The notes beneath the pieces were generated by a model. The model did no database searches and was not told the origin of the DNA. It was given only the letters and a program-made list of their open reading frames with translations. Positions 5,769 through 41,038 of a stretch of 64,000 nt of DNA are shown here, piece by piece. This DNA is from Marsupella aquatica (lineage: Eukaryota > Plantae > Marchantiophyta): assembly GCA_973895155.1 (NCBI GenBank), contig OZ316899.1:15465974-15529973 (forward strand), written 5' to 3'. Numbering within the stretch: the stretch's first letter is position 1; the number at the start of each line of letters is the position of its first letter. The position numbers and the translations under genes are program-made.

Positions 5769-7532
5769 GTGATGGCCAAACAACACCCAGGAGAATATCT
5801 TTGCATCATTCATGACAAGATGGATCAAGCAAAGATGTGGATTCCAAAAATGGTCAGTACTCCTAAATCGCTTTCAGGTCATGGAATGCCACTACCTATT
5901 GCTCTCACAGGGATGTTGACCCATGGAAGGGATCCAAGAGTTTATGCACACTTTAGTGTCACTGGCCTTTGGCCAGGAGATGCCGATTTCACGATGACAT
6001 CCTTGGCTAAGTGTCTTCGAGACCTTGAGGAGTACAATGGAGACAAGACAGGTGACATGTTGGATGGCCTTTATTTGGAACCTCATAGACCTTTCTTTCA
6101 AGCCCTTCTTGACTTTGATGCATTTTTTAAGGGATATTTGGAACCAAAGAGTATTCCAATGAATAGGTATATTGGTTCTGAAGATGCAGTCAAAAGTCAG
6201 ACGGAGATGGTCTCCACCCAACATGGTGAGGATCAAGGAGGGGACATGCATGGGGAACAAGGCAGTCCAACTTTCAAGCCCTTGCCAAGGCACCTACCAT
6301 TGCAAATGGATAATTCAGCAAAGGATAACAAAAACCAGACTGTCATGGCATTTTGTAGTGAGCTTGTGAGTAGAGGAGTATTTGAAACTGTTCAAATGTC
6401 TTTTCTAATGGTTGGTCATACGCACAAAGATGTCGATGCACTCTTTTCGAAGGTATCATATCAAGTTCAGCACAAGGAAGTTGCAACTCTCCTTGCTCTT
6501 ATGGCAGAGGTTTGGGAATGTGAGAGCATTCATCCAGTTCCCAGATTGATACAAGAAGTTGCATCTTACAAAGAATATCTTCAAACTTTCAAGGTTAAAG
6601 ATATTCAAGGTCACTCAAAACCCGTATCATTTCTTTTCTCTATGAGAGATAATGTACCAATATTTCAGTATAAGTCTCATGTAAAGCAGGCTTGGGCTCC
6701 AGTTGGTGGAAGGTGCATTTGGGCAACAGATCTGACAACAAATTCTCTTCTTTTACCTAGTGGAGAGCCCTTAGCTAAATCCATTGGAGAGATACACAAA
6801 AAATCTGAAGAGATTATCCCATTTCTTAACAAGTACCTTGATTTTTTGAGAAAGAGTTGCACTGATGAGACATCTATAGCATATAAGGAAAGATTTCCTC
6901 TTATGAAATATTGGGAGAGAATTGTGGAGTTGTTGACAGATGGGCTCGCACTAGAAGGGGAGGGAAATAATCAATTTCCCTTGAAAAATGAGTTTTGGCC
7001 TAAGACTAACCACGGCACTGGTTACAAGGTCAACCAACCAAAACAAAGTGGTCCTCCAAGTGAAGATGAGGACAATGCAGAGATGACAGCTCTTCAAAAT
7101 GAGGTCTTGGAAGAGATGGAAGATCAAGCAGCACCATTTGTTGGATCTCGAGCTGAGAGAGAACAAGGACGGTGGATTCCCCTACAGGATATTCGTGAAG
7201 GGAACTTTGTATTTCTTCGACCCGAGGATGACTCGGACAAGAAAAATGGTGGAGGGCATTTCTGGTTGGTGAGAGCTTTGGGTTTAGTGGACCCTAAGCA
7301 TGAAGTCCCAACTACTGCTTCAACAAACCCTCCTCTGCCTCAACAATATGCTCCAATGTTTCTAGTTGAATGGTGGAGGCCTAAACACTCTAAACTTGAT
7401 GTGACTGAGAGTGCACGGTATCTAAACTGTTTCATGTCCACTAAGACATGGGAACGCGATCCAGGGTTTGGTGAGAACACTCAACATTGGCAGTATGCAA
7501 ATTCTGCAATGTATGGTTTTAATCTGGAATGA
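5769..7532 (+). CDS. Sola-like DDD transposase catalytic region (DUF7869-type)
   Basis: Motifs IIHDKMDQ, LQMDNSAKDNKN and SFLMVGHTHKDVDALFS are typical of Sola1/DUF7869-type transposases. Confidence 0.7.
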   Translation: MMAKQHPGEYLCIIHDKMDQAKMWIPKMVSTPKSLSGHGMPLPIALTGMLTHGRDPRVYAHFSVTGLWPGDADFTMTSLAKCLRDLEEYNGDKTGDMLDGLYLEPHRPFFQALLDFDAFFKGYLEPKSIPMNRYIGSEDAVKSQTEMVSTQHGEDQGGDMHGEQGSPTFKPLPRHLPLQMDNSAKDNKNQTVMAFCSELVSRGVFETVQMSFLMVGHTHKDVDALFSKVSYQVQHKEVATLLALMAEVWECESIHPVPRLIQEVASYKEYLQTFKVKDIQGHSKPVSFLFSMRDNVPIFQYKSHVKQAWAPVGGRCIWATDLTTNSLLLPSGEPLAKSIGEIHKKSEEIIPFLNKYLDFLRKSCTDETSIAYKERFPLMKYWERIVELLTDGLALEGEGNNQFPLKNEFWPKTNHGTGYKVNQPKQSGPPSEDEDNAEMTALQNEVLEEMEDQAAPFVGSRAEREQGRWIPLQDIREGNFVFLRPEDDSDKKNGGGHFWLVRALGLVDPKHEVPTTASTNPPLPQQYAPMFLVEWWRPKHSKLDVTESARYLNCFMSTKTWERDPGFGENTQHWQYANSAMYGFNLE

Positions 7533-9610: not shown

Positions 9611-12600
9611 AAGAGTGGAAAAGCAGATTTCCAACAACCAAATCGGGAGCGACAACGAACCTCCTTCAGCAACAAACAACAAAACCCAATTACATGTTTC
9701 AGGTGCGAAACCAAAGGACACACCCTGAAGGTATGCCATGCACCTAGCCACCTCGTTCTACTTTGTAAGAAGAGCTTGAACGAATCAAAATTTGAAGCAC
9801 ATGGGGCTTATTTAGAGTCACCCGAGATTATACCAGAAATCCATATGCTGAATTCATCACTGAATATCGAGGACCCGGACTTCTGCATCTTCGACAGTGG
9901 TACAACCCATACTATCCTTTGAGATAATAAATATTTCCATGGAATTACCCCTTCAGAAAGGAAAATAACAACGATAATGGGACAACATCAAATTGAGGAG
10001 GGTCATGGCAACGCCACAGTAGTTCTCCCAGAAGGAACAATTATAAAAATCACATCTGCGATATATGCTCCCAAAGCAACGAGAAATCTACTTAGTTTTA
10101 AAGACATAAGAGCAAATAACCTACATATTCAAACAGATATTCAAGACTCACGAGAAGTTCTACAAATAGTATCTCACTCATCAAAAGGCAGACTTGTTAA
10201 AGAAACTTTACAAGCTTACCCTTTAGGATACTATGCAACTCGAACTCAATGCTACCATGTTCAGACTGAATCATAGAACCTCACAGAGATCTGGCATAGA
10301 CGATTGGGACATCCTGGAACAAGCATGTTCCACAGAATTGTCAATAACTCTAAAGGAGTATCAAAAGAAGTACATCCTAGAGCATTCAAAGGACCATGCC
10401 TTGCCTGCTCACAGGGCAAGATGATTACTACTCCCTCCAATTCCAAAACCGAAAACCACATACCTGCATTTCTTGAGAGACTTCATGCAGATGTTTGCGG
10501 ACCCATCGATCCTCCCAGTGGCCCATTTTGCTATTTTTTGGTTGTCATAGACGCAAGCTCCAAGTGGTCAAGGGTTTCCCTATTATCAACCCGGAACCTC
10601 GTTTTCTCTCGGATTTTGGCACACATTATACGGCTGAGAGCTCAATTCCCAGAATATCCAATTCGAACCCTCAGGACTGATGGAGCTGGAGAGTTTACAT
10701 CAAAAACTTTTGATGAATTTTGTCTCATCAACGGCATTGATTCAAAATGGTATGGCCGAGTCACTTATTAAACGTATACAACTGATCTCTCGACCTTTAT
10801 TAATGCAATCCTCTCTTCCAGCGACCGCATGGGGACACGCAGTCCTACATGCTGCGTCTCTCCTTTTATACAGACCATCAGCCTACAATAGCACTACACC
10901 TCATCAATTGGCATTTGGAAATTCTCCAGACATTTCACACTTGAGAATATTCGGATGTCAAGTCCTCGTACCCATCCTAGGTCCCAAACAGACAAAATTA
11001 GGACTTCAAAGAAGAAAAGGTATCTATGTGGGATTTGACTCTACATCGATCATCCGATACATGGAACCTACCACTACAGATATATTCAAAGCCCGCTTTA
11101 CTGATTGTCATTTTTATGAAACCATTTTTCCAACTTTAACATCACCAGAGGGAAAACAGAAAACATTACCAAATACATTCACCTGGCACGCTAGTCCTGA
11201 ACTATGTCCAGATCCACGCACAGAACAGGCTGAATTAGAAGTCAGAAGAATTATCCAACTCACAAAGATTATGGAAGTTATACCTGATTCATTCGCAGAT
11301 GCAGCGACTGTAACTAAATCTCATATACCAGCAACGAATACCCCATCCCGGATACAAATCGAACCTCAGTTAGCGTCTGATCAACAATTAAAATCAAAGA
11401 GAGGACGCCCTCTAGGGGCTGTTGACAAACAACTTAGACAAAGGCGAAAGCTTCCAACATCACCTGAAACAAGACCACAAGCTCATACTTATATTTCAAA
11501 ATCATATCACCCAGAGACAGCCATACATTATAATACCACTGGCCACATCTTAGATAGAACTCGAGTAATACCTGATGATCAATTTGCTTTTCATATATCA
11601 CAGGATATTACTAACTTACCTGACCCGAAATCTGTCAAAGAAGCACAAAATCAAACAGATTGGCCTAAATGGCAAATAGCAATGAACTCCGAGTTAGATT
11701 CTTTGATATCTAGAAAAGCATTTGGTCCTATAACCATTGCTTCTCCAGACCAACACCTTACAGGATACAGAATCATATTTAACAAAAAGAGGAATTCCCA
11801 AGGAGAAATTGTGAGGTATAAAGCTCGACTCGTTGCAAAAGGTTATACTCAAATCTATGGCACAGATTATGACCTAACATATTCTCCAGTCATGGATGTA
11901 ACTACTTACCGATACTTGATAGCATTTGCAATCCAGCACAAACTTCTCATGCATCAACTTGATGTGGTGACCGCTTACCTTTACAGTCAACTTGACACTG
12001 TGATATATATATGGAAGTTCCACCAGAGCTTATAGAGCGTGTCAATTTCCATGCAAATTCAAATCATGATGCAGATATGCATAGTAGCAAACATGCAAAT
12101 GAATTTGACTACATAAATAAGCTGGTACTTCACAATGCTTCTAAAGCAATTGCATTCCAGGAAACTCCTGGAAAATACAGTACAAAGACCAAAGCAACCG
12201 ATAGAAAGACTCGGTTAGCTATTCAGGTTCTTCGTTCACTTTACAGCCTAAAACAAAGTGGACGTACCTGGTACCAACGTTTTAAAACAGAGATGATATC
12301 CATGGAATACAAACATTCAGAGATTGCACCTTGTCTATTCATAAAGAATGAAGAGTCTGAATTCATCATAATTGCTATTTATGTTGATGACCTAAACTTG
12401 TTTGGTACCCACAAGATGATGCAAGAATCTATACAAACGCTTAAACGCGTATTTGAAATGAGGGATTTAGGAAGAACTTCCTACTGCATTGGACTTCAGT
12501 TTGAACATTTGAAGTCAGGCATTCTCCTGCATCAAGAGACTTACACACAAAAGGTGTTAAAACATTTCCGCATGGATTTGTTAAAAGTTGTGAAGTCCCC

Positions 12601-13255
12601 CATGGATATACGTACCTTGGACATACAGAAAGATATGTTCAGGAAGAGAGAAGATTTTGAACCTTTACTAGGTTCAGATATGCCATACCTTTCGGCTATC
12701 AGTGCTCTAATGTTTCTATCTAATCAAACTCGACCGGACATAGCATTCGCGGTCAACTTACTCGCAAGACATAACGCACAACCCACTATCAGACACTGGA
12801 ATGGTATTAAAAGGATATTCCATTATCTAATTGGTACATCAGACTTTGGTTTATACTTTCCTTATGATGCAGATTATAATTTAACAGGATATGCTGATGT
12901 TGGCTATCTATCCAATCCACAAGATGGTAAATCTCAAACTGGATATATTTTCTTGATGGGCCCGACACCAATTTCATGGCACAACACCAAACAGACTCTT
13001 ACTACTACTTCTTCCAATCACTCTGAAATAATTGCTCTCTACGAAGCAAGTCGTGAATGTTTATGGTTACGAAAAGTCTTAGATCACATTCTGATCAACA
13101 CAGGTATATACAGCAAGACAAAACTTTTGCAGGATGCACAGATAGAGGCGAACATTCTGTTTTCAGGGGGAGCACGAACTCACCTGGAAACCCGAAATCA
13201 ACAAAACAGGACTGGCAGACAGCATCCGCAGCAACAACTTCTCACACAGTTTTGA
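9611..13255 (+). pseudogene. pol: Bianca-1 Pol (protease, GAG-pre-integrase, integrase, RT, truncated RNase H)
   Basis: Motifs DSGTTH, WHRRLGHPG, LHADVCGP, YKARLVAKG, IYVDD, GYADVGY. Contains stops and frameshifts, a small deletion at ~10740, and an RNase H truncation at ~13115. Confidence 0.9.
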
Positions 13256-16597: not shown

Positions 16598-16749
16598 TGT
16601 TATAACCCATACCTAAACCTACCCTACCTAGGGTTAAACCCTACTACAGTTAGGCCCAAATCCAATGCCTAACTACCTAGCCACCATAGGAGCTATATGT
16701 AATGTTGGGATGATGAATGAAGGTATTAGTTGTTCCACACCTTACAACA
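16598..16749 (+). repeat. 5' LTR of Bianca-2
   Basis: TGTTATAA...TACAACA, repeated at 31132-31284. Confidence 0.95.
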
Positions 16750-21668: not shown

Positions 21669-22374
21669 CACCCTTTGGACTGCTTCCGACCTACTTGTCT
21701 CCTGCCTAGGGGAGAATAAAAGTGAACCTCGCAGCTACACAACGATCAGATAATGATGCATGAAGGAGCAACCAGCAGATACCACATCAGGGGGAGCAGA
21801 ACGCACACATTCACACCTACAAAGCCAAAAGAGTCCAACATTACCACAACTCATTCGACGCGCAAGTACTCCGATCACTAATCACCAAACTCAACGCCGA
21901 GAAGAGAAGCGCCCGCCATCATCAAGAATGACCATCCCAAAGCGCAGCAGCTCACGACTTCATAACCGCGAACACAACAACAAAAGCGGCCCAAACATCG
22001 AGCGCTACCTCGAACATTTTTTATCAAACAGAAGAACCTATCGAACCCCACATAGTTCTACTGCCCTAAGCGCAAACTACGACTGACTTTGGACCTATAA
22101 CACGTAGAGGACTTACACACAAATTACTGACCAAACGATATGGGTACAAAGTCTTTGTGACAACCCACTTAAACATTTTTTTTAACAGACTACAATAACT
22201 TTACATTAACATATAGCTTGGAGGAAATGGTAACACTCTTTCCCCCTACAAGAAAGGAGAGGGGGTTTTAACGAGGTTACATTTCCCTCCCTAAATATAA
22301 ACCTTTCAATGACTAGGACATATTACACATCAGAGTAGGTTTTTTTTTTAGATGGTTGCAACATTACCCCGGGT

Positions 22375-22732
22375 TGTCATGCTGAGGGACAGTGCCTCTT
22401 ATGCACATCGGCATGTCCCTCTCATGCCCGCTAGGTATGTAGTTAGGGCTAGTGTACTACCTGAGTTAGCAACATGTACTTATAGCAAATTCCAGGCGTT
22501 CTTGAAGCAAACACGCTTGTTAGTGTGACGCCAGGACTTTGTGTACTTAGGGCATGTCTTTCTTTGTTGGTTTTTAGTTCTTCTTGAATCGCTGTTGACA
22601 GAGCTCAGACAGTGCTCGTCGGTTCCGTACATGGGATTCACACAGTGATTCGTTAGATGCTCCCGACCGATCTTGGCATCTCGTCGGTTTTTGATTTGAT
22701 TTTAGTACGCTTGTTTCTCTTACGCCTTTTAT
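22375..22732 (+). repeat. Split direct repeat A1
   Basis: About 96% identical by eye to 30573-30930; begins TGTCATGC. Confidence 0.95.
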
Positions 22733-22744
22733 TCAAGAAGAACT
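22731..22744 (+). promoter_or_regulatory. Putative self-priming PBS (ATTCAAGAAGAACT)
   Basis: Perfect 14-nt reverse complement of AGTTCTTCTTGAAT at 22576-22589 within A1. No TGG tRNA-type PBS is present. Confidence 0.7.
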
Positions 22745-24093
22745 GTCGAGTTAGCGGTGAAGGGAAGAAGATTGCTCGTGGCAATTTTGACAATTTTTGG
22801 TTAAGCCATTGCAATTTCCTTGATAGACATTGGAACAAGGCTTCAAAACTATGGGTTTAGTGTGGTGTTATGTGTATACTTAAGTGTATACACATAACAT
22901 TCCCGTCGGGGCCCAAGTTTTTCTTTTCCGGCCGCAACCTTCTTTGTGACCTACATCGGCGACTTGCTGCCAACTGCACAGGCTGCTGCGCCCTCGCTCG
23001 CATTTTTAAGACCCCTTTGGGAGTTTGGGACCCCTTTTTCGTTAGTTTTTATGGCCATTTCCCGACCACGGCTGCCGCGCGACCATCATCGGACTGCCTC
23101 GGCCACCGTGCGCGACTACTTCCCAACTGCATAGGGCCACGTGCCCCTTTTCTTTCTGCCTTTCTTACTCCTTTTTCGCCTCATCGCCTCACCATTCCTT
23201 CTTTTTGTTTCCTCCCGTTGCCAGCATCCCGGCCAGCATTAAAACAGGGGAGGAGAGGGCACAAAGCCCAATACATCATTAAAAGAGGGGAGGGGGGAGC
23301 GCAAGGAGAGGGCACGAGGCCCATTTTTCATTCAAAGACAAGAGGGGGAGAAGGGGAGTACATTCGACTCCCTCCTCTCGGGAGTCACAGTCCTGCCAGG
23401 CACGAGGCCCTAGGCAGCATTAGAGGAGGGGGAGGTGTGCAAAGCCCTATGTAGGGCTCAAGCACTTAAAGGCCCGTTTTTCTTTTTCCTTGCCTCGCCT
23501 TGGGTCTCATCTTTTCCTTTCGCCCTTGCCAAAGCCGTTTTTCTTCTGTTTCTTTTTTTGTTTCTCCATGGTCGCTCGTCCGTTGCGTGACGATTGTAGA
23601 GTCTTTTGACTCACATGAGGGCATGTGCATAGGGCACCGCGGCCGGTCCCCACTATGACCATTTTTCTGCTGACGCCCTGCCCCATGTGTATACACTTAA
23701 TTGGGGCCCTTTTCTTTTAGTTTTTGGCCTTCTTGCTCCTTCGCCGTGCGACGACCGTCCCACCTACTTTTGCATACCTTTGCTGCCAGTTTCTGGGTCC
23801 ACAAGGGGCCCAAGGTATACACGTAAAGGGGGCCCTCCTTTCACATTCTAGGGGCCCATTTTCCCTTATTCTTTGCTTTGCCTATGTATACACATAGGTA
23901 AGTGCGACAAAGGAAAATTTGGTGGTTTTAAGGGTCCTTTTTCTCCGGTGACAGTTTCTCCGTGTTTACACATTCTACATATTTTTGTCTCGCATCGTTT
24001 GTTTCCTTTGTGGGTTACATTTCCTAGCCTTGGGGTTGCCACACCTTTTTCTTGTCAGTTTCTTCCCATTGGCACCTCGGGTGAGCATGCAGC

Positions 24094-27000
24094 ATGTCAG
24101 CAAAGGAGCCGAGTCATAGCAGCTCATCGCCACCGACACCCAGGTACCACTTGCGGAGTGATCCACGGCCGTTGGTGCCAATTTCATTGGAGTCTCGGCA
24201 ATTTCAACGACGCCAGCAGACAACAGTAGCACCCACACCACGCAATCCTTCTGCTACATTTGGCGGTCGCTTTACCACTACCCCGAAGCCTGCTATCGCT
24301 TCTCTGCCCTTTACTCCTTCTGCATCAGTGATTGTTCCAGCTTCACCGACATACAACATGGATGCTAGTCACTCATCTAGCCACATTGAGCACTTCAGTG
24401 AGCGGCCAGGCACTGTTTCTTTGCCTGAGTTCAAATCCACTTTCTACACTGTCATTTATGAATTGGAGTTAAAGTACGGCAGCAATTTCACAAATGCTTT
24501 TGCATTTAAGCAGCTAGCCAGGTATGTGCACCATGAGGCTTTGGATGTGTGTGAGCAGCATTCTCAATGGCTGCTTGCTGTCACACAGTTGCCTAACCCT
24601 ACCTATGCCAGTGCAATTGCGGCAGCCTCACAATTGGACTTACAGAATGCCATTGCAGCCCATGCTGCTGCTCCTGCCACTTCCCCTCCTACTCCAGTTC
24701 CTACCACTGCGCCAGTTACTCCCACTGTCTTGACACAGGCTACATCAGGCATTTCTCCCACCATTGATTCTCCTGCCTTTGCTGATCCAGTGGCTGAGTT
24801 TTTCCAGGTTCTTGAATTGGAATTCCCAATCAAGAGTGCTGACAAAATCATGCAGTTGGCCACCTTTGTGAGGCAGCGCGATGAAACCTTGAAGATGATG
24901 TATCGCCGGCTTCTCAAGCTGAAGGAGGACACCCAGAGCATCACTGACCTGGAAGCTACTCATTGCTATCTTCGAGCATTGGAGGGCACACCAGCTCTCC
25001 ATTCGCAAGTATTGCAGCAAGTATTCTCAGAGTTTGGAGACAACTACACCCTGCTCAATGTCTATGACACTGCTGAGAAACTTGAGTTGGCCCATGCACA
25101 TTATGAGGCCAGTATTGCACGTCCACCGCGATCCAGGTACCAGACTGCTGCCCCTACACTGGGCACCCCTTCCCGTGTGCCACAGTATGGTTCCAAGACC
25201 AAGCCAGCCCATGCCGCTTTCATGCTGCCATCTTGCAACTACTGTGGTAACCCCAATCACAAGGCTAATGAATGTGATATTGTTGTTGAGGACCTGTCTT
25301 ATGATTTTTGCGGGAAAGTGGGTCACTTGGAGGCAGTTTGTTTTGCCAAATTCCTAGAGAGGAAGCAGCTACGACAGCAGGCCCCTCATCCTGCTCCTGC
25401 TTCCACTCCCCCACCAGCTAGGAGGGCTCCTATTGCCTCAGTTGCTCCTCCTTCCAGTGGCAAAGGACCCGGTGCCAACAAATCGCCCAAGCAGCAACAG
25501 AAGCAACCAGCTCAAAAGGAGGCTCACAACACACAGGCAACTCAACTCCAGTCTCTGACTCATGAGGTTGAGTCCCTACGTGCCCAACTTGCCAACATCA
25601 AAGGCAAGTCAACTGCCTCTGCTGGTCCTTCTCAACCGGCTGGTCACGTGCAACCCATCCCTGGCCCAGGCACCACTGACAGTTCAGCACCTCTACCCCG
25701 CTCTTTCTATGGCTTGCCATTTGATGCTCATATGGGTGAGTGTGTGCTGTCCTCTGCTACACAGCCTGGCCTTACAGCAAAATTTTCAGATTCATTCTGC
25801 CCATCCTATTTTGCTTACCAGCAAGCCAGTGCTGCCTCCCGTATTGCTCCCACACGCCGCATTGTACAGGCTGATGGTCTTGCTGCCGGTCCTATGACTA
25901 GAGCTAGGGGAGCTCGGGCTGTCCTGCCCCAATCTTTTCAGCCACTCACACTTCCTGAAGAGCGCACCTTCTTGGCGAGGGGGGAGGGAGCTGCAGCCAC
26001 ATCCATTCCACCACCAGGTGCTGCTGACATTTCACATGGAGTTGTTTCTCCTAAGCTGCTTGAGCATTTCACCTCCGGTATGGCACAAAGGATTCTTACA
26101 ACTCCACTTTTCAATTGCCATGATTTACAACTGGATGCTAGAGCTGTCATGAGAGTGCTAGAGGGCTCACTGCATTCTTCATCAGCTCCAGTGCCACCGG
26201 TTTTGGAGGTCCAATCTCATGTACATGCTAGACCTTCTTCTTCTCCATTACATGCTTCCACTAGTTTGGCTATCCCAGTACCAATTTTCAGTGGTAGAGA
26301 TGACAGTATTGCTGCAAATTGTGTGACCAGAGCTACACTTGATTCTGGTCATGTTGCTCCATCTTTCCTGGCTATGCTATTGAGTGGGAAGACCATGGAC
26401 ACTAACTCCCTTCACAAGGTACCTCATCATTTGCCAAAAGTGGTGCCTAGTGACAGGACTTTAGTTTCCACCACCATTGCCATTGTTGACAACAGGAATT
26501 CAGCGGACAAGTTGGAGGGTCACACTCCTCAGGTGGTCATGCTAGACACAGGCACTCAACCAGTGATATTGGACATTCAGTTTGCCAAGAAGATGGGACT
26601 GCTGACTGTTCATTTACAGCAATCCATGTGGCACATTCGGACTGCTAGTGGCATTGTGGAGGATGTGCTGGGTGAGAGTTCTACTTTACTCACTCTCACT
26701 TTTAATAGAGGTACAGATCAGGAATTGCATTTCCCAGTCAGATGTTTGGTTACCAATGCCATTACGTATGATGTGCTCATTGGCCAGGAGGCTTTGTTCC
26801 CACCAGGTTTTACCATTGACAACTGGCATGAGCATGCATACTACAGAGTTGATTGGCATACGGATGGCTCACACTTGGGCTACATTCCACTTGATTTGCA
26901 TGGTGCCCATACACCTATGGCTCACCACTATGTGTTGAAAGTAGTGCACACAGCTACCTATGTCAACCACCCATTGCAGGATTGGATTGAGGAGGATGAT

Positions 27001-27396
27001 GCTGAGGTGGCTACTGCACATGCTGCTGCACGTATAGCAGCACTTTCCAGCAATGTGGATCATCAACTAGAGGTGGTACAACGGCTCCAAGCAGCCCATG
27101 GACCTTTGGTGACTGCATTGCGCAAATTTGAAGACCTTGGGCAGCACAATGGCCAACCAATAGCCCCAATCTTGAGCGCACCAGTTACATGGACTGCTCC
27201 TTCAGATGACCTTACATTGCTTGAGCTTTTTGGTGGCATTTCTACAGGCCTGGAAGCTCTCCTACAGTCTGGCATGGTGGTGAAGCACTACATCTATGTG
27301 GATATTGATCCAAGTGCAAGGCAAGTGGCTGAATCCCGTCATCAGGTCCTATTCCTAGTGTTGCCAACTACACATTCATCGTGGGCAACCACCTGA
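24094..27396 (+). CDS. gag: Gag (zinc knuckles) - aspartic protease - N-terminal fragment of C5 DNA methyltransferase
   Basis: 1100-aa ORF with CNYCGNPNHKANEC, DFCGKVGHLEAVC, VMLDTGTQ...YDVLIG, and LLELFGGISTGLEAL...YIYVDID near the end. Confidence 0.85.
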   Translation: MSAKEPSHSSSSPPTPRYHLRSDPRPLVPISLESRQFQRRQQTTVAPTPRNPSATFGGRFTTTPKPAIASLPFTPSASVIVPASPTYNMDASHSSSHIEHFSERPGTVSLPEFKSTFYTVIYELELKYGSNFTNAFAFKQLARYVHHEALDVCEQHSQWLLAVTQLPNPTYASAIAAASQLDLQNAIAAHAAAPATSPPTPVPTTAPVTPTVLTQATSGISPTIDSPAFADPVAEFFQVLELEFPIKSADKIMQLATFVRQRDETLKMMYRRLLKLKEDTQSITDLEATHCYLRALEGTPALHSQVLQQVFSEFGDNYTLLNVYDTAEKLELAHAHYEASIARPPRSRYQTAAPTLGTPSRVPQYGSKTKPAHAAFMLPSCNYCGNPNHKANECDIVVEDLSYDFCGKVGHLEAVCFAKFLERKQLRQQAPHPAPASTPPPARRAPIASVAPPSSGKGPGANKSPKQQQKQPAQKEAHNTQATQLQSLTHEVESLRAQLANIKGKSTASAGPSQPAGHVQPIPGPGTTDSSAPLPRSFYGLPFDAHMGECVLSSATQPGLTAKFSDSFCPSYFAYQQASAASRIAPTRRIVQADGLAAGPMTRARGARAVLPQSFQPLTLPEERTFLARGEGAAATSIPPPGAADISHGVVSPKLLEHFTSGMAQRILTTPLFNCHDLQLDARAVMRVLEGSLHSSSAPVPPVLEVQSHVHARPSSSPLHASTSLAIPVPIFSGRDDSIAANCVTRATLDSGHVAPSFLAMLLSGKTMDTNSLHKVPHHLPKVVPSDRTLVSTTIAIVDNRNSADKLEGHTPQVVMLDTGTQPVILDIQFAKKMGLLTVHLQQSMWHIRTASGIVEDVLGESSTLLTLTFNRGTDQELHFPVRCLVTNAITYDVLIGQEALFPPGFTIDNWHEHAYYRVDWHTDGSHLGYIPLDLHGAHTPMAHHYVLKVVHTATYVNHPLQDWIEEDDAEVATAHAAARIAALSSNVDHQLEVVQRLQAAHGPLVTALRKFEDLGQHNGQPIAPILSAPVTWTAPSDDLTLLELFGGISTGLEALLQSGMVVKHYIYVDIDPSARQVAESRHQVLFLVLPTTHSSWATT

Positions 27397-28915
27397 GTAA
27401 AAGACAGAAGGACCAGCTGCTGAATTTGCTCCTCAAGCATGAGAACGTGTTTGCTTTCTCTATGAAGGACTTGGGTAAGTGCAAGACTATGCAGTTCTCC
27501 ATTGAGTTGGCTGATGAAACACCTATCTTCAAGCGGAGACACCGTTTGAGTAAGCATGAGTGGCAGCTGGTGGATGAGAGGTGCCAAGAGCTCTATGAAG
27601 CTGGTCTTATTCAACCATCTACATCAGATTTTGCAGCAGCTACAGTGATGTCAGCAAAGAAGGATTCCAGTGGATTATGGACAGAGAAGCGCATGTGTGG
27701 GGACTACAGGCCACTGAACCTGGTCACACCCCAGGACAGGTACCCCATGCCATAGCCAGAGGAGCTAATTGACAGCATTGGAGACTCAAACATCTTCACT
27801 CTTGTAGATCTAAGGCAAGGCTTTAACCAGATTTTGCTGCTTGCAAAGGACCGCAAGAAAACAACTTTCCATGGTAGTAACCAACTATGGGAGTGGTTGG
27901 TGATGCCATTTGGCTTGAAGAATGCGCCCATATTCTTTCAAAGAGTCATGGACCAGGTTCTTCAAGGTGCTGAGTTTATGAAATGCTACATTGATGATGT
28001 GTTGGTCCACAACAAAGGATTTGACCAGCATCTACTTGACCTTGAGGAGCTATTCATGAGGCTTAAGAAGGTGAACCTAAAGATACACCCCAAGAAGTGT
28101 GAATTTGCTGTTAGATCAGTAGTATACCTTGGGCACCGCATTCTTCCAAATGGAACCATGGCTCACTGGGCCAAGGTGGTATCCATCTTGGAAATGCCCA
28201 CTCCTACCGATGTTCACACTTTGAGGAGTTTTATTGGGTTATGCAATTCCTACCGGATCTACGTCAAAGATTTCAGCACCATTACACACCCATTGTATGC
28301 TTTGTTGAAAAAGAATGTGACTTGGACATGGAGTACAGATGCTGAGGCAGCATTTGCCACTTTGAAGGAGAAGCTCTCAGCATACCCGATGCTGAGAAGA
28401 CCTGATTTCAGCAAGGTCTTTGTACTACACACAGATTGGAGTGCCCTTGGGATTGGTGCCATTCTGGGCCAGCATGATGAGGAAGGTATAGAGTACGTCA
28501 TTGCTTATGCATCCAGGAGCAACAATCAGGCCGAGAATCATTATTCTTCTTATGAGGGTGAATGCCTTGTTGTTGTGTGGGCTGTCATACATTACAGGCC
28601 CTACCTCTATGGGACCAGGTTTGTTCTCTACACCGACCACCAGCCCTTGAAGTGATTGATGACCAACGACAAGCTTATTGGCAAGCTTGCTCGTTGGGTG
28701 CTCATACTCCAGGAGTATGATTTTGAGGTAATTCATAGGCCTGGTGTGACACATCAAAATGCTGACACTATGTCCCGCAGCCCTTTGATTGCCTCTGATG
28801 ATTCTTCAGATGCACGGCAGGATTTTGACCAGGTTTCCATCCTGCCTACATTTCATGCATCTACCTATCTTGCTTTGCTGCCATGCTACGTTGTTGATCA
28901 ACCTGTGGTGGACAT
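27381..28915 (+). pseudogene. pol: Ty3/gypsy reverse transcriptase and RNase H
   Basis: RMCGDYRPLN, VMPFGLKNAP, CYIDDVLV, LHTDWS, YEGEC, YTDHQPL; a few in-frame stops. Confidence 0.92.
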
Positions 28916-30355
28916 ATGGGAGGACAGCGACACTCTGAGATTTTTGCAGCATGGGGAGTACCCCATACATGTTACTGCAACCCAGAGAGACCAATTCAGC
29001 AAAGGTCCAAGCATTACTTGTGGAAGGGAGATCATCTCGTGCGCTGCTTGCCAGACAGGGAAGTGGTGGTTCCACCCATTCATGAGAGGGTTGGCCTTAT
29101 CCGTAAGGTACATTCTAAGCTTGGTCATTTTGGCGTTAAGAGGACTTACAGCCACTTGGTCCCTCATTATCATTGGAGAGGCATGCATGGCCAGGTTCGA
29201 GATGTTATTGCCCGGTGTGAACAGTGTGATAGGGTGAGGACTTCTTTTACATCTCGGCAACCCACACTTCATCCACTCCCTATTTAGGGCATGTTTTATT
29301 GTTGGTCATGTGATTTGGCTGGAGAATTACCCCTCACATCTCGGGGTAATCTCTACATCATGATCATGATAGAGCATTTCTCCAAGTGGATAGAATTTGT
29401 GGCATTGCCGGATAAGACCTCTCGTAGCACCAGCCAAGCATTCCTACAACAAGTTCTCAGTCGCTTTGGAGCTTGTGCAGAATGTCTCACTGACCAGGGC
29501 TCAGAGTTTAGAGGAGAGTTCCAGGAGCTGCTTGATCAGGCCCTCATTGATCATCGCCGGACATCACGAGATCACCCACAGGCAGATAGCTTGGCAGAGC
29601 GCATGGTTCAGACATGCAAGAAGGGTCTCCAGAAGATTTGCCTCACCAAAAACAAGGAGGATTGGGACCTGGCCTTACCCTACATTGCCATGGGGTATAG
29701 GATGTCCAGACATGCATCACTGTCTAACTTTTCTCCCTTCTTCTTGTTGTTTGGTCGTCACCCAGTTCCACCTTCTGCTACTGCTGCTCACATGCTTCAG
29801 GTGGTGGACTTGGATTCAGTTGTGACTTGGTCTGACGTGATCTCTGAGAGGGCTGCCCTATTTAGGAGGGTTATGCCCATGGCCATGGAGAATTTGGCCA
29901 TTGCACAGCACAGGGACACTGCGTTATGCACACACACAAGGGGGCACTTTTCAGCCCAAGGTCAGAAGTTTGATGTGGGGGATTTTGTGTACTTGCAGCG
30001 GCAAGCTAACGACACCCTGGACACCTCTACCAGTCGTACCATTCTTAGGGTTAAGGCTATTCGACCGTCTGGAGTGCTAGAGTTACAAGGGGCAAATGGG
30101 TGCACAATTGCTGACAATGCCAAGAATTGCGCCCCTTGTCATCTGCCCAACCTGGATCCCACCATTGTGACTTCTACCTGGATTCCACCTGTGGACTACC
30201 CTTGCAAATTGTGTTTGCAAATTGATGATGCTGACCAGATGCTGCTATGTGATAATTGCAATGGAGGGTACCATCTTTTCTGCCTTCGGCTTGAACTTAC
30301 CCAGGTGCTAGAAGGGTTATGGTTTTGCCCGTCCTATGCTCCACGTGCTACCTGA
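28916..30355 (+). pseudogene. pol: DDE integrase (H2C2 + core) with C-terminal PHD finger
   Basis: HSKLGHFG..CEQC; CDLAG / TDQGSEF / AERMV triad; CKLC..DDADQMLLCDNCNGGYHLFC....WFCP. Confidence 0.92.
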
Positions 30356-30387
30356 CTTTTCTTCAGCCCTCCTTTTGGCTGTGGTCT

Positions 30388-30394
30388 GGGGGGG
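30388..30394 (+). promoter_or_regulatory. PPT-like G7 tract
   Basis: Directly abuts the start of repeat B1. Confidence 0.6.
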
Positions 30395-30570
30395 ATACAG
30401 AGGTTTACACCTCCACTACGTACATACCACCTCATTTCCTTTTTCTTGGCACTTGTAAATGTGATGAGACTTTTTCTATGCATGCTGGTTGCTAGCAGCT
30501 TGCACATATGCCTTGCCGGTGACTTGTATGTTTTCGATACTCTATGGCTTCGATACTATATGTCACGATA
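30395..30570 (+). repeat. Split direct repeat B1
   Basis: 176 bp, ~6 mismatches to 30931-31106. Confidence 0.95.
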
Positions 30571-30572
30571 GC

Positions 30573-30930
30573 TGTCATGCTGAGGGACAGTGCCTCTTAT
30601 GCACATTGGCATATCCCTCTCATGCCCGCTAGGTATGTAGTTAGGGCTAGTGTACTACCTGAGTTAGCGACATGTTCTTATAGCAAATTCCAGGCGTTCT
30701 TGAAGCAAACGCGCTTGTTAGTGTGACGCCAGGACTTTGTGTACTTAGGACATGTCTTTCTTTGTTGGTTTTTAGTTCTTCTTGAATCGCTGTTGACAGA
30801 GCTCAGACAGTGCTCGTCGGTTCCGTACACGGGATTCACACAGTGATTCGTTAGATGCTCCCGACCAATCTTGGCATCTCGCCAGTTTTTTATTTGATTT
30901 CAGTATGCTTGTTTCTCTTACGCCTTTTAT
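30573..30930 (+). repeat. Split direct repeat A2
   Basis: Copy of 22375-22732; separated from B1 by the dinucleotide GC. Confidence 0.95.
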
Positions 30931-31106
30931 ATACAGAGGTTTGCACCTCCACTACGTACATACCACCTCATTTGCTTTTTCTTGGCACTTGTAAATGTGA
31001 TGGGACTTTTTCTATGCATGCTGGTTGCTAGCAGCTTGCACATATGCCTTGCCGGTGACTTGTATGTTTTTGATACACTATGGCTTTGATACTATATGTC
31101 ACGATA
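30931..31106 (+). repeat. Split direct repeat B2
   Basis: Copy of 30395-30570; followed by TSD GGGT. Confidence 0.95.
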
Positions 31107-31131
31107 GGGTCATGTTACACCCAAGGGGGAG

Positions 31132-31284
31132 TGTTATAACCCATACCTAAACCTACCCTACCTAGGGTTAAACCCTACTACAGTTAGGCCCAAATCCAAC
31201 CGCCTAACTACCTAGCCACCATAGGAGCTATATGTAATGTTGGGATGATGAATGAAGGTATTAGTTGTTCCACACCTTACAACA
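31132..31284 (+). repeat. 3' LTR of Bianca-2
   Basis: PPT before, TSD ATTAC after. Confidence 0.95.
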
Positions 31285-33060: not shown

Positions 33061-36000
33061 TGTGATGCCTAGCCAGGAATCATTAGGCCAGTTTAATTAG
33101 TAAAATCAGGAGTGTACCCTAGGAAACACCTTAGTATAGTAACAAAAATAGGGAAATATAAACAATTAAGGGTGACTATGGAACCCAAGCCCAGGCCAAA
33201 AGTAAGGATGCCGGGGGAAACACGATTAGGGTTAGGGCTCGCTAAGCACCGGCGGCTACTAACGGGAAGGAAGACCAGCCAAGGGGGGGGGGGTAAGGAC
33301 CGAGCGCAAGGACTGTCGGCTCATTTGCAAACACAAGCCAAGCGGACGACTACGGGAGGCCAACTGCTGTCCGCTGCTCAGGCAAGCACTCGGGGTGGAA
33401 GCAGATACCGACAATCAACTCAAGAGGGGTATGAGCAACGTCAATCAAGCTGCTCATTTTTGGGGATGCCTGTTAGAACGGGCAATTGAGTACATTGGGA
33501 CCTACCAGGACAAAGAATCAGAGAGAGCGGCTTGAGAACGGCAGGAACTCGCTCGGCTGTGGGAGCTGCATAAGTCTCCTTTCTTAGGAGGAAAACTCAT
33601 TACGGCTGAATTCTTGTAGACGCCTACTGCCGACAAACTCGACGATCTTCTGTTTTGTGAGAACAAGATAGTCGGCATCCGAGAGGCCATCAACCGCTGC
33701 AACGACATACACTGGGAGTTGAAGGGTAGCACGGAGGGGTGGACGAAGGCAACCGTGCTACGAGAAACATCCACGGCAGCCGCTATGAAGAGGAAAGGGA
33801 ACAACAATGAAGAAGCCACCCCTGCAAAAAGAACAAGGTTGGCGGCACCCAGGAAACCAACAGACCAGGGAAGCAGGAGGCAGGCGGAAGCCGAAGAGGA
33901 GGAGGTCGACCCCGTCAATGTCGTTCCGACAAGAGATGACACCTGGAAAGGCTGGGCGGCGACCCTCCCCAAGGAGGTGCAATTACACTTTGCGCGGGAA
34001 GAGGATGCATGCTTTATGGCTATGCAGACTTGGAAATACCAGGGCTTCATGGCCGGATCCGGCTTGGAAGCATTTGTAAAGTTACCATGGCTGAAGTCGG
34101 AGGTACCGGATTCAGACTTACTGGAATTCGTGGGATCATGGGAGCCCGAGACCAATTCCACAAGGGTGTATGGGAAGGATTTCTATCTCACTCCCCGGGT
34201 GATTGCCAAAGTGTTTGGCTTGCCGATGGGCAATAAGACCAAAGTAGATACCAGGAAGACCTTGCCAGACAAGGAGTTCCGGTCATTTCCAAGGCCATCA
34301 ACAAAGAATGGCTTCTTCCGAAACACCTGCACCAACCCACACATAGAGAAATGATTGATTTCTTGCGGGTGACCATGCATTGTAACTTGCCGAGGGCAGA
34401 GATCGGCAAGGCACAGGTCTATCTGGCAGAGAGGCCAGACCCAAGCCGAGACTACAACGGGTACCTCCTCACCCAACTAAAGAAGATCTTGAAGGAGGAA
34501 CAGCTGGTGATCGGCATGGGAAGCGTGTCCCGACTTGGTTATCACATGCCGCTGTTGTGCCGGTATGCCCACAGCCAGATATTCGCCTCGGTACTGCCCC
34601 TGCAGGCAAGAGCACCAGAGGAGGTTCCGGAACCAAGGCCGGCAACAGAGAAACCAACCCAGCTCGATAGTCCTACAATCGAGCAGGTGTTTAGGCCGAG
34701 GAAGGAGGACTTGCCGATGCAGCAACCAGGCATGCAAAATCTGCTGAAATTGTTGGAGAAGGAAAGGAGAACAGCAGCGGCAATGGGGCCAGTACAAAAT
34801 ACTACTTCCGAAGTTGGCCTTAGCAACTTACTAGGGAAAACCCCTTTATCGGGGCCAAGGAGAGAAGGAGGCCAGAACACGAGTCGGGAGTCCAAATGTA
34901 TGTAGGAGCTTCAAGTCCCGAAGCTGAGGAGAAGCAGCCCGAGGCCCCTGGTCACGACAGGGAGAAGATGAGATCAACGTGGAAGCTGGAGGAACCAGGA
35001 CCCATGATCTGTGGGGTTGTGTTCACGGCAGGACCAGGACAGCAGCGGGGGGAGCTGGTAGTCCAAGCCGAGGAGGAGGCGGTAGAAGGCTACGACAATG
35101 ATGACTCCGGCTACGGGTCGGACCATCATGTTCTAGGAATAAGGACCTGTGGCAGGTTCATCCCCACTCTTCCGAGAGTAGTTTGAGGCGACCCGACCCA
35201 GGAGAGCAGCCCCGAATCTCCCCCACCAGATGTCACTCCCTGGAGTTTTGACGGCATAAAACAGACGGCACAGGAGTTTCAAGAACAACGCAGGGAGGAA
35301 GAGGAGGCAGCCCTAGCAAGGGAGAAGGATTTACCAGGAGGAGAATGGCCAGAGGACATCCGGCGGCTTGCAAAAAATGAAGCAACCCGCCAGCCACGAT
35401 AGAAAGAAACTCGCAAGGCTGCCTGGGAACAAAGGCCACGGTGGATGATGCCAATGACTTCTGCTCACTCCGCCTATGCTAAAGAATGAGCCATGGAGTA
35501 CGGGAAGATGTGTGGGGAACTTGCGCTCGACATCTTTGGGGAGGAGTTGGAGCAGGGACCTTTTTTCCAGAGGGAAATGTTGGAGAAGCATCGATTAAAA
35601 GAAGCGGTGGCTTTGGAAAGAAGCAAGAAGGATGAGGTCATCCGTCGGCTTAGGGCAAGGAAAGCCGAGGTAGAAGACCTGAAGGCATCCAGGAAAGCCC
35701 AAGATGAGCTGCAGATTAAGTGGCATGAGCTCAACATCATGCAGGGGCAATTGGATATTGCGCAGTCTGATAATTAGATTATCAAGGATAAACTGACTCG
35801 GACCCAATGTGATTTGGCCAATTCAATCAAGGAGAAGGAGAAGTGGAAGCAAGAGCTGAGAGACGCAGAGGAGGCCCACATAGCAGCCAACAATCGGACC
35901 ATGGCGGAAACTCAGAGAAGGGAAAGGGCGCTGAAGGGGAAACTCTAGGATATCCGCGGAGCCCTTGAGCAGAAGGAGGACGAGTTAGGGAAATCCTATC

Positions 36001-39300: not shown

Positions 39301-41038
39301 TTGTTGTTGCCGATGCCGATCTCTTTTCTTTCTCCAGTAGTTTCAGCAGACTCTGCATGCCTGGTTGCTGCATCGGCAAGTCCTCCTTCCTGGGCCTAAA
39401 CACCTGCTCGATCGTAGGGCTAACAGGTGGTTGAGGCTTCTCAGCCAACGGCCTCGGCGTTGGAGCTTCCTCGGGTGCCCTTACCTGCAGGGGAAGTACT
39501 GGGGCAAAAGTTTGACCTCTGGCATACCGGCACAACAGCGGCATGTGATAGCCAAGCCGCGACACGGTCCCCATGCCAATTACCTGCTGCTCCTCCTTTA
39601 AGATCTTCTTCAATTGGTTGAGGAGGTACCCGTTGTAGTCCCGGCTTGGGTCTGGCCTCTCTGCCAGATAGACCTGTGCCTTGCCGATCTCTGCCCTCGG
39701 CAAGTTACAATGCATGGTCACCCGCAAGAAGTCGATCATCTCTCTCCTATGTGCGGGTTGGTGCAGGTGTTCCGGAAGAAGCCATTCTTCGTTGATGGCC
39801 CGGGGAACGACCGGAACTCCTTGTCAGGCAAGGTCTTCCTGGTATCAACTTTGGTCTTATTGCCTATCGGCAAGCCAAACACTTCGGCAATTACCTTGGG
39901 AGTAAGATAGAAATCCTTCCCATATATCCTCGTGCAATTGGTCTCGGGTTCCCATGACCCCACGAATTCTAATAGGTCTGACTCCGGTACCTCCGGCTTC
40001 AGCCATGGTAATCTTACAAAGGCCTCTAAGCCGGATCCGGCCATGAAGCCTTGGTACTTCTTGGTCTGCATGGCCGTAAAGCATGCATCCTCCTCCCGTG
40101 CAAAATGTAGTTGCACCTCCACCGGTAGGGTTGCCGCCCAGCCCTTCCAGGTGTCATCCCTGGTTGGAATGGCCTTGATGGGATCGACCTCCTCCTCTTC
40201 GGCTTCTCCCTGCCTCCTGCTCTGCTGCCCGACTGGCTTCTTTGGTGCCGCCGACCTCGTTCTTTTTGCCGGGGTGGCTTCATCGTTGACGGCTCCCTTC
40301 CTCTTCATCTCTGCTGCCGTGGAGGTTTCTCCTAGCACCGTTGCCTGGGTCCACCTTTCCGTGCTACCCTTTAATTCCTAGTGTATGTCATTGCAGTTCT
40401 TGATGGCCTCTCGGATGCCGACGACGCTGTCTTTGCAAAACAGAAGATCGTCGAGTTGATTGGAAGTAGGCGTCCACAGGAACTCGTCCTTGATGAGTTC
40501 GCCTCCTAAGAAAGCCGTCTTCTGCAGCTCCCACAATCGAGCGAGCTCCTGCCGTTCTCGAGCTACCCTTTCTGATTCCTCGTCCTCGTAAGTCTTGATG
40601 TACTTAGTTGCCCGTTCGAACAGGCATCCCCAGAAATGTGCCGCTTGATTGACGTTGCTCATACCCTCCTTAGGTCGATCGTCAGTATCTACTCTCTCCC
40701 CGAGTGCTTGCCTAAGCAGCTGATAGTAGTTGGCCTCCAGTAGTCGTCTGCCTAGTTCGTGCTCGCAAATGAGCCACCATCTCCTCCAAGCGCTCCTTAC
40801 CCCTCTCCTCTGCCGGTCCTTCTTCCCGTTGATCCTTCCTAGCCGCCGATGCTTAACGCGCCCTAACCCTAATCGAGTTTTCACCCTCAGTGTCCTTACC
40901 TCCGGCCTCGGCCCGGGTTCCATGGTTGCCCCTAATTGTTTATATTTTCCTTGTTTTGTCCCTATACTAAGGTGTTCCTAGGGTGCCTTCCTGGTTTACC
41001 CACTTAACTGGCCGAGTGATTCCTGTCTAGGCATCACA
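36376..41038 (-). mobile_element. Giant solo LTR, family A copy 3 (4663 bp)
   Basis: Inverted orientation; perfect TSD TGAGG (36371-36375 and 41039-41043); same termini. Confidence 0.95.
37287..40923 (-). pseudogene. LTR-encoded ORF of A3 (~1200 codons, few lesions)
   Basis: Pieces 40378-40923, 39736-40338, 39086-39739, 38958-39182 and 37287-38891 (534-aa coiled coil). Confidence 0.85.

Follow-up and report, generated by a model that had tools for sequence, protein, structure and literature searches.

Split direct repeats in a Ty3/gypsy retrotransposon of the liverwort Marsupella aquatica, and a proposed integration of permuted cDNA at an internal junction

The element described here lies at positions 22375-31106 (+ strand) of a 64,000-nt stretch of Marsupella aquatica DNA (GCA_973895155.1, contig OZ316899.1, 15,465,974-15,529,973, forward strand), which is called the window below and whose numbering is used unless another locus is named. 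It is a Ty3/gypsy retrotransposon with a DDE integrase (IN), in which the usual pair of long terminal repeats (LTRs) is replaced by split direct repeats in the order A1-internal part-B1-GC-A2-B2. The available copies support this layout as a family trait, accompanied by target-site duplications, and not a one-off. On balance it is probable that the lineage integrates a permuted cDNA whose termini have been joined and which is cut at the internal B-GC-A junction, the junction of the 5' LTR being the one used.

Repeat layout in the window and in relatives

The window element consists of A1, gag/pol, a run of seven G's, B1, GC, A2 and B2, and is bounded by a duplicated GGGT, read directly at 22371-22374 and 31107-31110 (all features of the element are on the + strand) and comparable to the 4-bp duplications of its relatives. 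A1 (22375-22732) starts with the left integrase end, TGTCATG, and represents the 3' part of U3 and the R-U5 of the LTR defined by reverse transcription; it is 96.4% identical to A2 (30573-30930) over 358 nt. The primer-binding site (PBS) already begins with the final two bases of A (AT), which refines the boundary of this segment. The polypurine-type plus-strand primer site (polypurine tract, PPT), GGTCTGGGGGGG (30383-30394), is kept in all relatives; its seven G's (30388-30394) stand directly 5' of B1 (30395-30570), the 5' part of U3. B1 and B2 (30931-31106) are 96.6% identical over 176 nt. The last bases of B1, GTCACGATA, are the same as the right integrase end, which is supplied by B2, the terminal copy of B. 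The GC spacer between B1 and A2 (30571-30572) is the centre of a B/A palindrome, the internal junction J. A2 adjoins B2 directly (TTTAT/ATACAG), and the joint (30929-30932) consists of the U5 end, AT (the first 2 nt of the PBS) and the PPT-defined start of B. Two identical terminal LTRs, as in other gypsy elements, are found neither here nor in any relative: the left end is A only and the right end is B-GC-A-B. By repeat comparison and sequence reading the layout is confirmed as real, exactly at the coordinates given by the original prediction for this DNA. Within the 64-kb window no further copies of A, B or the internal part, and no empty site, were found.

Relatives were collected by several routes. 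The IN-PHD module was common to 475 cluster representatives at E<1e-30 in a profile-free search, and a scan of JGI metagenomes gave 80 loci with an IN 64-80% identical to that of the window element. These loci are called Sphagnum-type host DNA because their B matches a Sphagnum magellanicum chromosome at 88% identity. The nearest named relative is from the liverwort Calypogeia fissa, at 83-84% identity. Counts of 3' and 5' ends refer to independent loci, the same place in different assemblies being merged. L001 (GCA_030144725.1) and L083 were set aside as too rearranged or nested for the layout to be read, as was L085, a Klebsormidium nitens contig too short for the repeats to show. An empty-site comparison at L018, in a repeated host transposable element, gave flanks contiguous within a few bases and an unclear duplication, and was not used. 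A repeat of ~0.8-0.95 kb, very often nested in or beside the elements (L018, L020, L038, L041, L052 and many Sphagnum-type loci), contaminated two of the 'A' queries (972 and 1155 nt).

The 3' ends comprise 25 B-A-B, 21 B only, 2 B-A and 3 variants, the latter being nested insertions in A plus one B-A-B-A-B. In all, about 28 independent relatives, from Sphagnum-type contigs, C. fissa and two further assemblies, carry B-GC-A-B at the 3' end. About 55% of 3' ends are B-A-B, and about 40% of copies are A-internal-B without any repeat, an abundance that the original prediction did not foresee. The 3' end of L002, a metagenome contig with an IN 59% identical to that of the window, follows the same logic as the window, reading GGTCTGGGGGGGG/B...GACGCGACA-GC-TGTCACAG...A/B...GACGCGACA/flank; the flank beyond is the reverse transcriptase (RT) of another copy, reversed. 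The C. fissa locus L084 likewise has B-GC-A-B at its 3' end, with copies of B that are 98.9% identical. Perfect 4-bp duplications flank 9/10 copies having both ends. Among copies of the form A...BAB they are GGGT (window), ACAA (L057), ATCA (L061) and TTTA (L051), with GCAT/ACAT matching at 3/4 positions in L017. Among copies of the form A...B they are CCAA (L027), ACAA (L066), TCCC (L048) and ATGG (L077 and, again, L067), with a 3/4 match, AATG/AACG, in L090 of S. magellanicum. Within each full copy the divergence of A1 from A2 agrees with that of B1 from B2, and all four segments therefore date from one event. Independent insertions thus share A...BAB, with duplications at the same ends.

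A one-off rearrangement, or an assembly artefact, of an ordinary LTR element could be suspected from the single and decayed copy in the window. It is refuted, and its probability is negligible: at least 25 independent loci, in several assemblies as well as in named genomes, repeat the layout base for base at all four boundaries; none of the relatives compared has ordinary AB...AB or BA...BA LTRs; and duplications flank the ends of A...B. Ordinary LTRs elsewhere and a tyrosine recombinase (YR) gene had been named beforehand as findings that would speak against the original prediction; neither was found, since no relative compared has ordinary LTRs and no sizeable open reading frame on either strand encodes a YR.

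Three loci show further arrangements of the same segments. The Sphagnum-type L041 (11114-12855) ends in B-A-B-A-B, with three B and two A, and is either the expected reciprocal product of an unequal exchange between B1 and B2 or a three-LTR form of the cDNA. In C. fissa an isolated A/B unit without internal part (L084:1662-2228, - strand) shares 99% identity with the complete 3' end close by; its flanks do not match as a 4-bp duplication (GAGT vs ATTC), and its joint carries two extra bases, AC. It represents either a truncated copy or a solo equivalent that arose between two elements. The third, L088 (6150-7600; Logan SRR26084411; IN 48% identical), runs pol-PPT-B-palindrome-A-PBS-gag unbroken in one short-read contig, with two tandem GACAGCTGT palindromes 11 bp apart. 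It was not counted as a circle, since a short-read assembler may collapse A1 and A2 into the same order; this order may reflect such a collapse or a real tandem or circular form.

Integrase ends, self-priming and the A2/B2 joint

Inserted copies all begin with TGTCATG and end with ...GTCACGA(C/T)A beside the duplication, these ends being imperfect inverted repeats with canonical TG...CA. The same two ends stand head to head within the LTR with GC between them (TGTCATG / CGTGACA), forming a palindrome, and in all relatives read the end of B, ...CACGACA, is followed by the spacer and then by TGTCATG. The junction palindrome is CATGACAGCTGTCATG in L007 (16 bp), GACAGCTGTC in L002 (10 bp) and TAGCTG in the decayed window copy; the spacer in old copies is GC, GT, AC or AT, all decay products of CAGCTG by C-to-T change. 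Foamy-virus and HIV-1 integrases were reported to cut palindromic LTR-LTR junctions (PMC1180852, PMC1905944). The predicted integrase site at the internal B/A junction is supported by the inserted ends, which repeat the two halves of the palindrome.

No tRNA-type TGG primer-binding site follows A1. The PBS is of the Tf1 self-priming type, ATTCAAGAAGAACT (22731-22744), and its exact 14-nt reverse complement, AGTTCTTCTTGAAT (22576-22589), is predicted to be the self-primer and to mark the start of R; PBS and self-primer are paired in the predicted minimum-energy fold. The primer and PBS of the Sphagnum type are AGTTTTTCTAGAATT and AATTCTAGAAAAACT, complementary up to 15 nt (including L017), and those of L088 are CTTAAGAACTGCTC and GAGCAGTTCTTAAG, different yet complementary, so that window, Sphagnum type and L088 differ in a compensatory way. 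Across relatives the complement is perfect over 11-15 nt, shrinks to 8-9 nt in three decayed copies and is lacking in L073. Self-priming is known in the Tcn1 elements of mosses (PMC6317226), and the PBS is a predicted signature of Tf1-type self-priming.

In all relatives read, the G-run adjoins the first base of B and the PBS adjoins A. Because the PPT lies at the start of B, the self-primer within A and the PBS at the end of A, the LTR made by reverse transcription is predicted to be B-GC-A, with U3 formed by B, GC and the first ~200 nt of A, and with R starting at the self-primer. This composition is supported, and the original prediction was right in deriving an LTR of B+A from a PPT abutting the start of B and a priming site abutting the end of A. 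Given its canonical TG...CA ends and inverted termini, A+B could also be taken as the true LTR, the 5' LTR having lost its B and B1 being a secondary duplication that became fixed in the family. The PPT adjoins B and not A, however, the PBS adjoins A and not B, and no copy has B after A1; moreover, the divergence of B1 from B2 tracks that of A1 from A2 copy by copy, which means that each insertion renews B2. An A+B LTR is thus extremely improbable.

At L017:1860-1905 (also in L016 and L028) the U5 end holds GCAATTC-AATTC-CTTCTTTCATTC before the true PBS, an internal duplication of the U5 end and of the PBS prefix. The A2/B2 joint of L017 lacks AAT and ATACA and has one extra G.

The joint between A2 and B2 is hypervariable. 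Extra bases at the joint of Sphagnum-type copies are A, AA, AAT, AATT or AATTC, all prefixes of their PBS, AATTCTAG; in the window they are AT, and the window PBS starts ATTCAAG. At a few joints 2-5 nt of B are missing. Joint states do not track relatedness: those of L003 and L039 differ at 96% identity of the two copies, the tight clade of L004, L007 and L029 has three joint states, and an indel falls exactly at the joint in 6/7 close pairs, as against 2-6 indels over the other ~470 columns. Two C. fissa copies, about 99% identical, differ at the joint by AC, the predicted start of their PBS. Since joint states are independent of relatedness and consist of PBS prefixes, the joint is made afresh at each transposition and not copied. 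These observations support the reading of A2/B2 as a joint of two cDNA termini, like that of a 2-LTR circle, and the end-to-end ligation of cDNA proposed originally agrees with this behavior.

The hypervariable joint also bears on replication of the DIRS type, in which template switching of the RT on a B-A bridge would build A...BAB with templated joints, a YR being supplied in trans. Such a layout is usual for PAT and Ngaro elements and for some of the DIRS type (PMC5890265), and the RT and RNase H (RH) of DIRS are related to those of gypsy. There is, however, no YR gene, and the DDE integrase is conserved throughout the 475 cluster representatives; 4-bp duplications and TG...CA ends are not made by YR elements; and a joint that varies among sister copies with PBS prefixes is untemplated. 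This explanation is refuted by these data and is very improbable.

Proposed route of integration

The lineage, which comprises Ty3/gypsy elements of bryophytes and charophytes with a pol of the order protease (PR)-(C5 cytosine methyltransferase, DNMT)-RT-RH-IN-PHD and Tf1-like self-priming, is proposed to use integrase ends that differ from the ends of its cDNA. Reverse transcription would yield an ordinary linear cDNA with the LTR B-GC-A, its U3 beginning at the PPT-defined start of B and its R lying inside A. The integrase ends (...GTCACGACA and TGTCATG...) would thereby be placed head to head inside the LTR, as a palindrome separated by GC with a CAGCTG core. An integrase complex on this junction could nick after CA on both strands, and the opened junction would match processed retroviral ends exactly, with recessed CA-3'OH ends and complementary 2-nt 5' overhangs. 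Joining of the cDNA termini, namely the U5 end with 1-5 nt of left-over PBS and the first base of B, would give a joint of the 2-LTR-circle type. Together with opening at the PBS-proximal (5') LTR junction, it would produce the replicating form A-internal-B-GC-A/B, and integration would generate the 4-bp duplication. Copies of the form A-internal-B might stem from a one-LTR form, from cutting at both junctions or from later recombination between B1 and B2; such copies should be unable to replicate because the 3' R is missing.

The literal model of a circle holds that a closed 2-LTR circle, joined by host end joining, is obligatory and that the integrase opens it at the internal B/A site, as in IS3 and IS30. 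It accounts exactly for A-internal-B-GC-A/B; the joint is untidy and contains PBS bases, as in 2-LTR-circle junctions; integrases do cut palindromic LTR-LTR junctions (PMC1180852, PMC1905944); and a one-LTR circle would yield the A-internal-B copies observed. Such a circle would, however, offer two identical junctions, and the mirror form A-B-A-internal-B was found at 0/13 independent 5' ends, as opposed to the B-A-B seen at about 55% of 3' ends. A symmetric circle should have left about four mirror copies, even if later A/A recombination is taken into account. No circle has been observed, and an intasome acting on the early-completed 5' LTR junction of a linear or unfinished cDNA is equally consistent with the data. 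The obligatory closed circle is therefore unlikely, if not markedly so: of the circle integration originally proposed, the permuted cDNA with joined ends and the internal cut are supported, the closed circle being a less likely variant.

The missing mirror form instead points to use of the PBS-proximal LTR junction only, for which the order of synthesis offers a possible reason. The 5' LTR should become double-stranded after about 0.5 kb of synthesis following the second strand transfer, while the 3' LTR would do so only once about 7.6 kb of plus strand has been made. An intasome could thus commit to the 5' junction on unfinished or linear cDNA, the termini being joined before, during or after strand transfer; a circle subject to another bias would fit equally.

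Several points weigh against integration of a permuted cDNA by internal cutting. The absence of the mirror form demands an additional source of asymmetry. The cDNA form, the circle and the cleavage are all deduced from integrated copies. Most of the loci compared were assembled from metagenomes that represent one or a few host genomes, and the copies are old and decayed. Some slippage might occur at the joint, which is short and AT-rich. Finally, the A-internal-B copies may all be secondary deletions, and L041 shows that unequal exchange does occur.

Coding region, surroundings and known systems

On the + strand the Pfam matches follow the order aspartyl protease, RVT_1, RT_RNaseH/RT_RNaseH_2, Integrase_H2C2, rve and PHD. 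The order PR-RT-RH-IN with gypsy-type RT and RH is that of Ty3/gypsy (Metaviridae), and rve with Integrase_H2C2, a short duplication and TG...(C/T)A ends are likewise those of Ty3/gypsy integration. The gag-protease frame (24085-27393) has CCHC-like knuckles and a protease near residues 808-901. It is followed by the frame for RT and RH (27333-28652), which has an in-frame stop at 27753 and is ended by the stop at 28653, by the H2C2 zinc-binding domain of the integrase (28898-29284), reached via a frameshift, and by the DDE core with its C-terminal PHD finger (29288-30352). The catalytic D, D and E are all kept, and the last zinc ligand pair of the PHD finger is damaged. With two in-frame stops (27753 and 28653) and a frameshift near 29234-29288 in pol, the window copy is dead. 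No YR was found by Pfam in any sizeable open reading frame (ORF) on either strand (no match of the Phage_integrase type), which bears out the gypsy RT and RH with a DDE integrase, and no YR gene, of the original prediction.

A C5 DNMT remnant of 47 residues with motifs I-II (LELFGGISTG...YVDIDP) is present at 27199-27339; a full DNMT was suspected in the window copy and ruled out. Sphagnum-type copies have a DNMT-like domain of ~330 residues between PR and RT (L042:6812-7759, L015:4510-5457 and about 40 others). This domain is homologous to that of the distant relative P0011, which is positive for DNA_methylase and has it between RNase H and integrase instead.

A copia-type element hosts the gypsy copy, which lies 21 bp upstream of the copia 3' LTR and just before the copia polypurine tract. 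The copia LTRs (16598-16749 and 31132-31284; 153 bp) are 98.7% identical, RVT_2 ORFs are found at 19.1-21.6 kb, and the only relative of this element in the window is 66% identical. Divergence seems lower between the host LTRs (2/153) than between the repeats of the nested gypsy copy (3.5%), numbers too small to matter. Elsewhere in the window a 587-residue ORF (5769-7532, + strand) has a strong match to DUF7869 (E=1e-43) and is probably another mobile-element protein, and a second copia-like pol is located at 10680-13255. A dispersed repeat of roughly 440 bp occurs in three copies of 78-82% identity (33061-33500, 51601-52046 and, on the - strand, 40598-41038).

The original prediction knew of no gypsy family with such a layout. 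A precedent is KnitGypsy-Dnmt3 of K. nitens, described as having gypsy domains and repeats 'the same as that of a DIRS retrotransposon' (de Mendoza et al. 2018, PMC5890265, Fig. 4c legend). The layout is given in that legend only, without ends, duplications, PBS, junction or mechanism. The IN-PHD region of K. nitens KFL_015960010 is 49% identical to that of the window (E=6e-154), and by this similarity the window family is homologous to KnitGypsy-Dnmt3. Both have a gypsy Pol, a DDE integrase and DIRS-type repeats, those of K. nitens by the description in the paper. KnitGypsy-Dnmt3 carries a C5-DNMT in Pol, which is of full length in Sphagnum-type relatives, sitting there between PR and RT and not after RH; the window copy, from another host, has lost most of it. 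A literature search on gypsy elements with split or permuted LTRs gave nothing beyond PMC5890265, and no paper was found that gives ends, duplications, self-priming, palindrome, joint heterogeneity or mechanism. Gypsy-7a_cRei of Chlamydomonas, with a PHD finger and 'LTR subparts', was rejected as prior art, since the LTRs described are essentially normal. The element is thus a bryophyte-host addition to a barely characterised kind, whose layout was noted in 2018; no precedent for the mechanistic reading was found in the literature searched.

In the textbook picture, LTR retrotransposons and retroviruses insert a linear cDNA by its two termini, and circular forms are a dead end. A wider reading, tentative and falling a little short of probable, is that a lineage extending from charophytes to liverworts and mosses obligatorily integrates via an internal palindromic junction and may represent a living intermediate between gypsy and DIRS/PAT/Ngaro. 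If true, linear-end LTR integration and YR recombination would be joined by a third logic of integration, and the junction-based layout would have come first, the recombinase being swapped in later on the way to DIRS/PAT/Ngaro; for the origin of DIRS-like elements this offers a route that can be tested. With integrase sites inside the LTR and the termini joined inside the insertion, the messy ends of self-primed cDNA would need no precise trimming. Split direct repeats, taken as a hallmark of YR elements, arise here with a DDE enzyme. LTR-finding software will mis-annotate such elements, including the A-internal-B copies, which have no repeats. The family may also serve as a natural system for junction cleavage by a retroviral-type integrase, and the C. 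fissa copies, being about 99% identical, suggest that active elements may exist in that liverwort.

Among known systems, the DIRS group (PAT, Ngaro, TOC1/kangaroo) has in common with the window family the order A1-internal-B1-A2-B2 and an internal B-A junction equal to the joined outer ends. DIRS elements encode a YR and make no target-site duplication, whereas the window family has split repeats together with a DDE integrase, TG...CA ends and 4-bp duplications. Self-priming chromoviruses of the Tf1/sushi and plant Tcn1 kind, found in mosses (PMC6317226), likewise have no tRNA PBS and a PBS complementary to the start of R; they differ by ordinary identical LTRs and a C-terminal chromodomain, where the window family has permuted repeats and a PHD finger in place of the chromodomain. 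Integration of the window family would resemble retroviral cleavage, in which the DDE integrases of foamy virus and HIV-1 cut the palindrome of abutted LTR ends (PMC1180852, PMC1905944, PMC4372172); the retroviral cut site is the end-to-end joint, so that cutting restores the linear genome, whereas in the window family cut site and joint would be separate and the genome permuted. A likeness to bacterial insertion sequences is also evident in the two abutted ends, the short spacer and the DDE enzyme. For the DDE transposases of IS3, IS30 and IS911, abutted ends with a short spacer are the active substrate cleaved for insertion. These are DNA transposons whose junction is made by the transposase, whereas the junction of the window family is a permanent internal sequence of a repeat made by reverse transcription.

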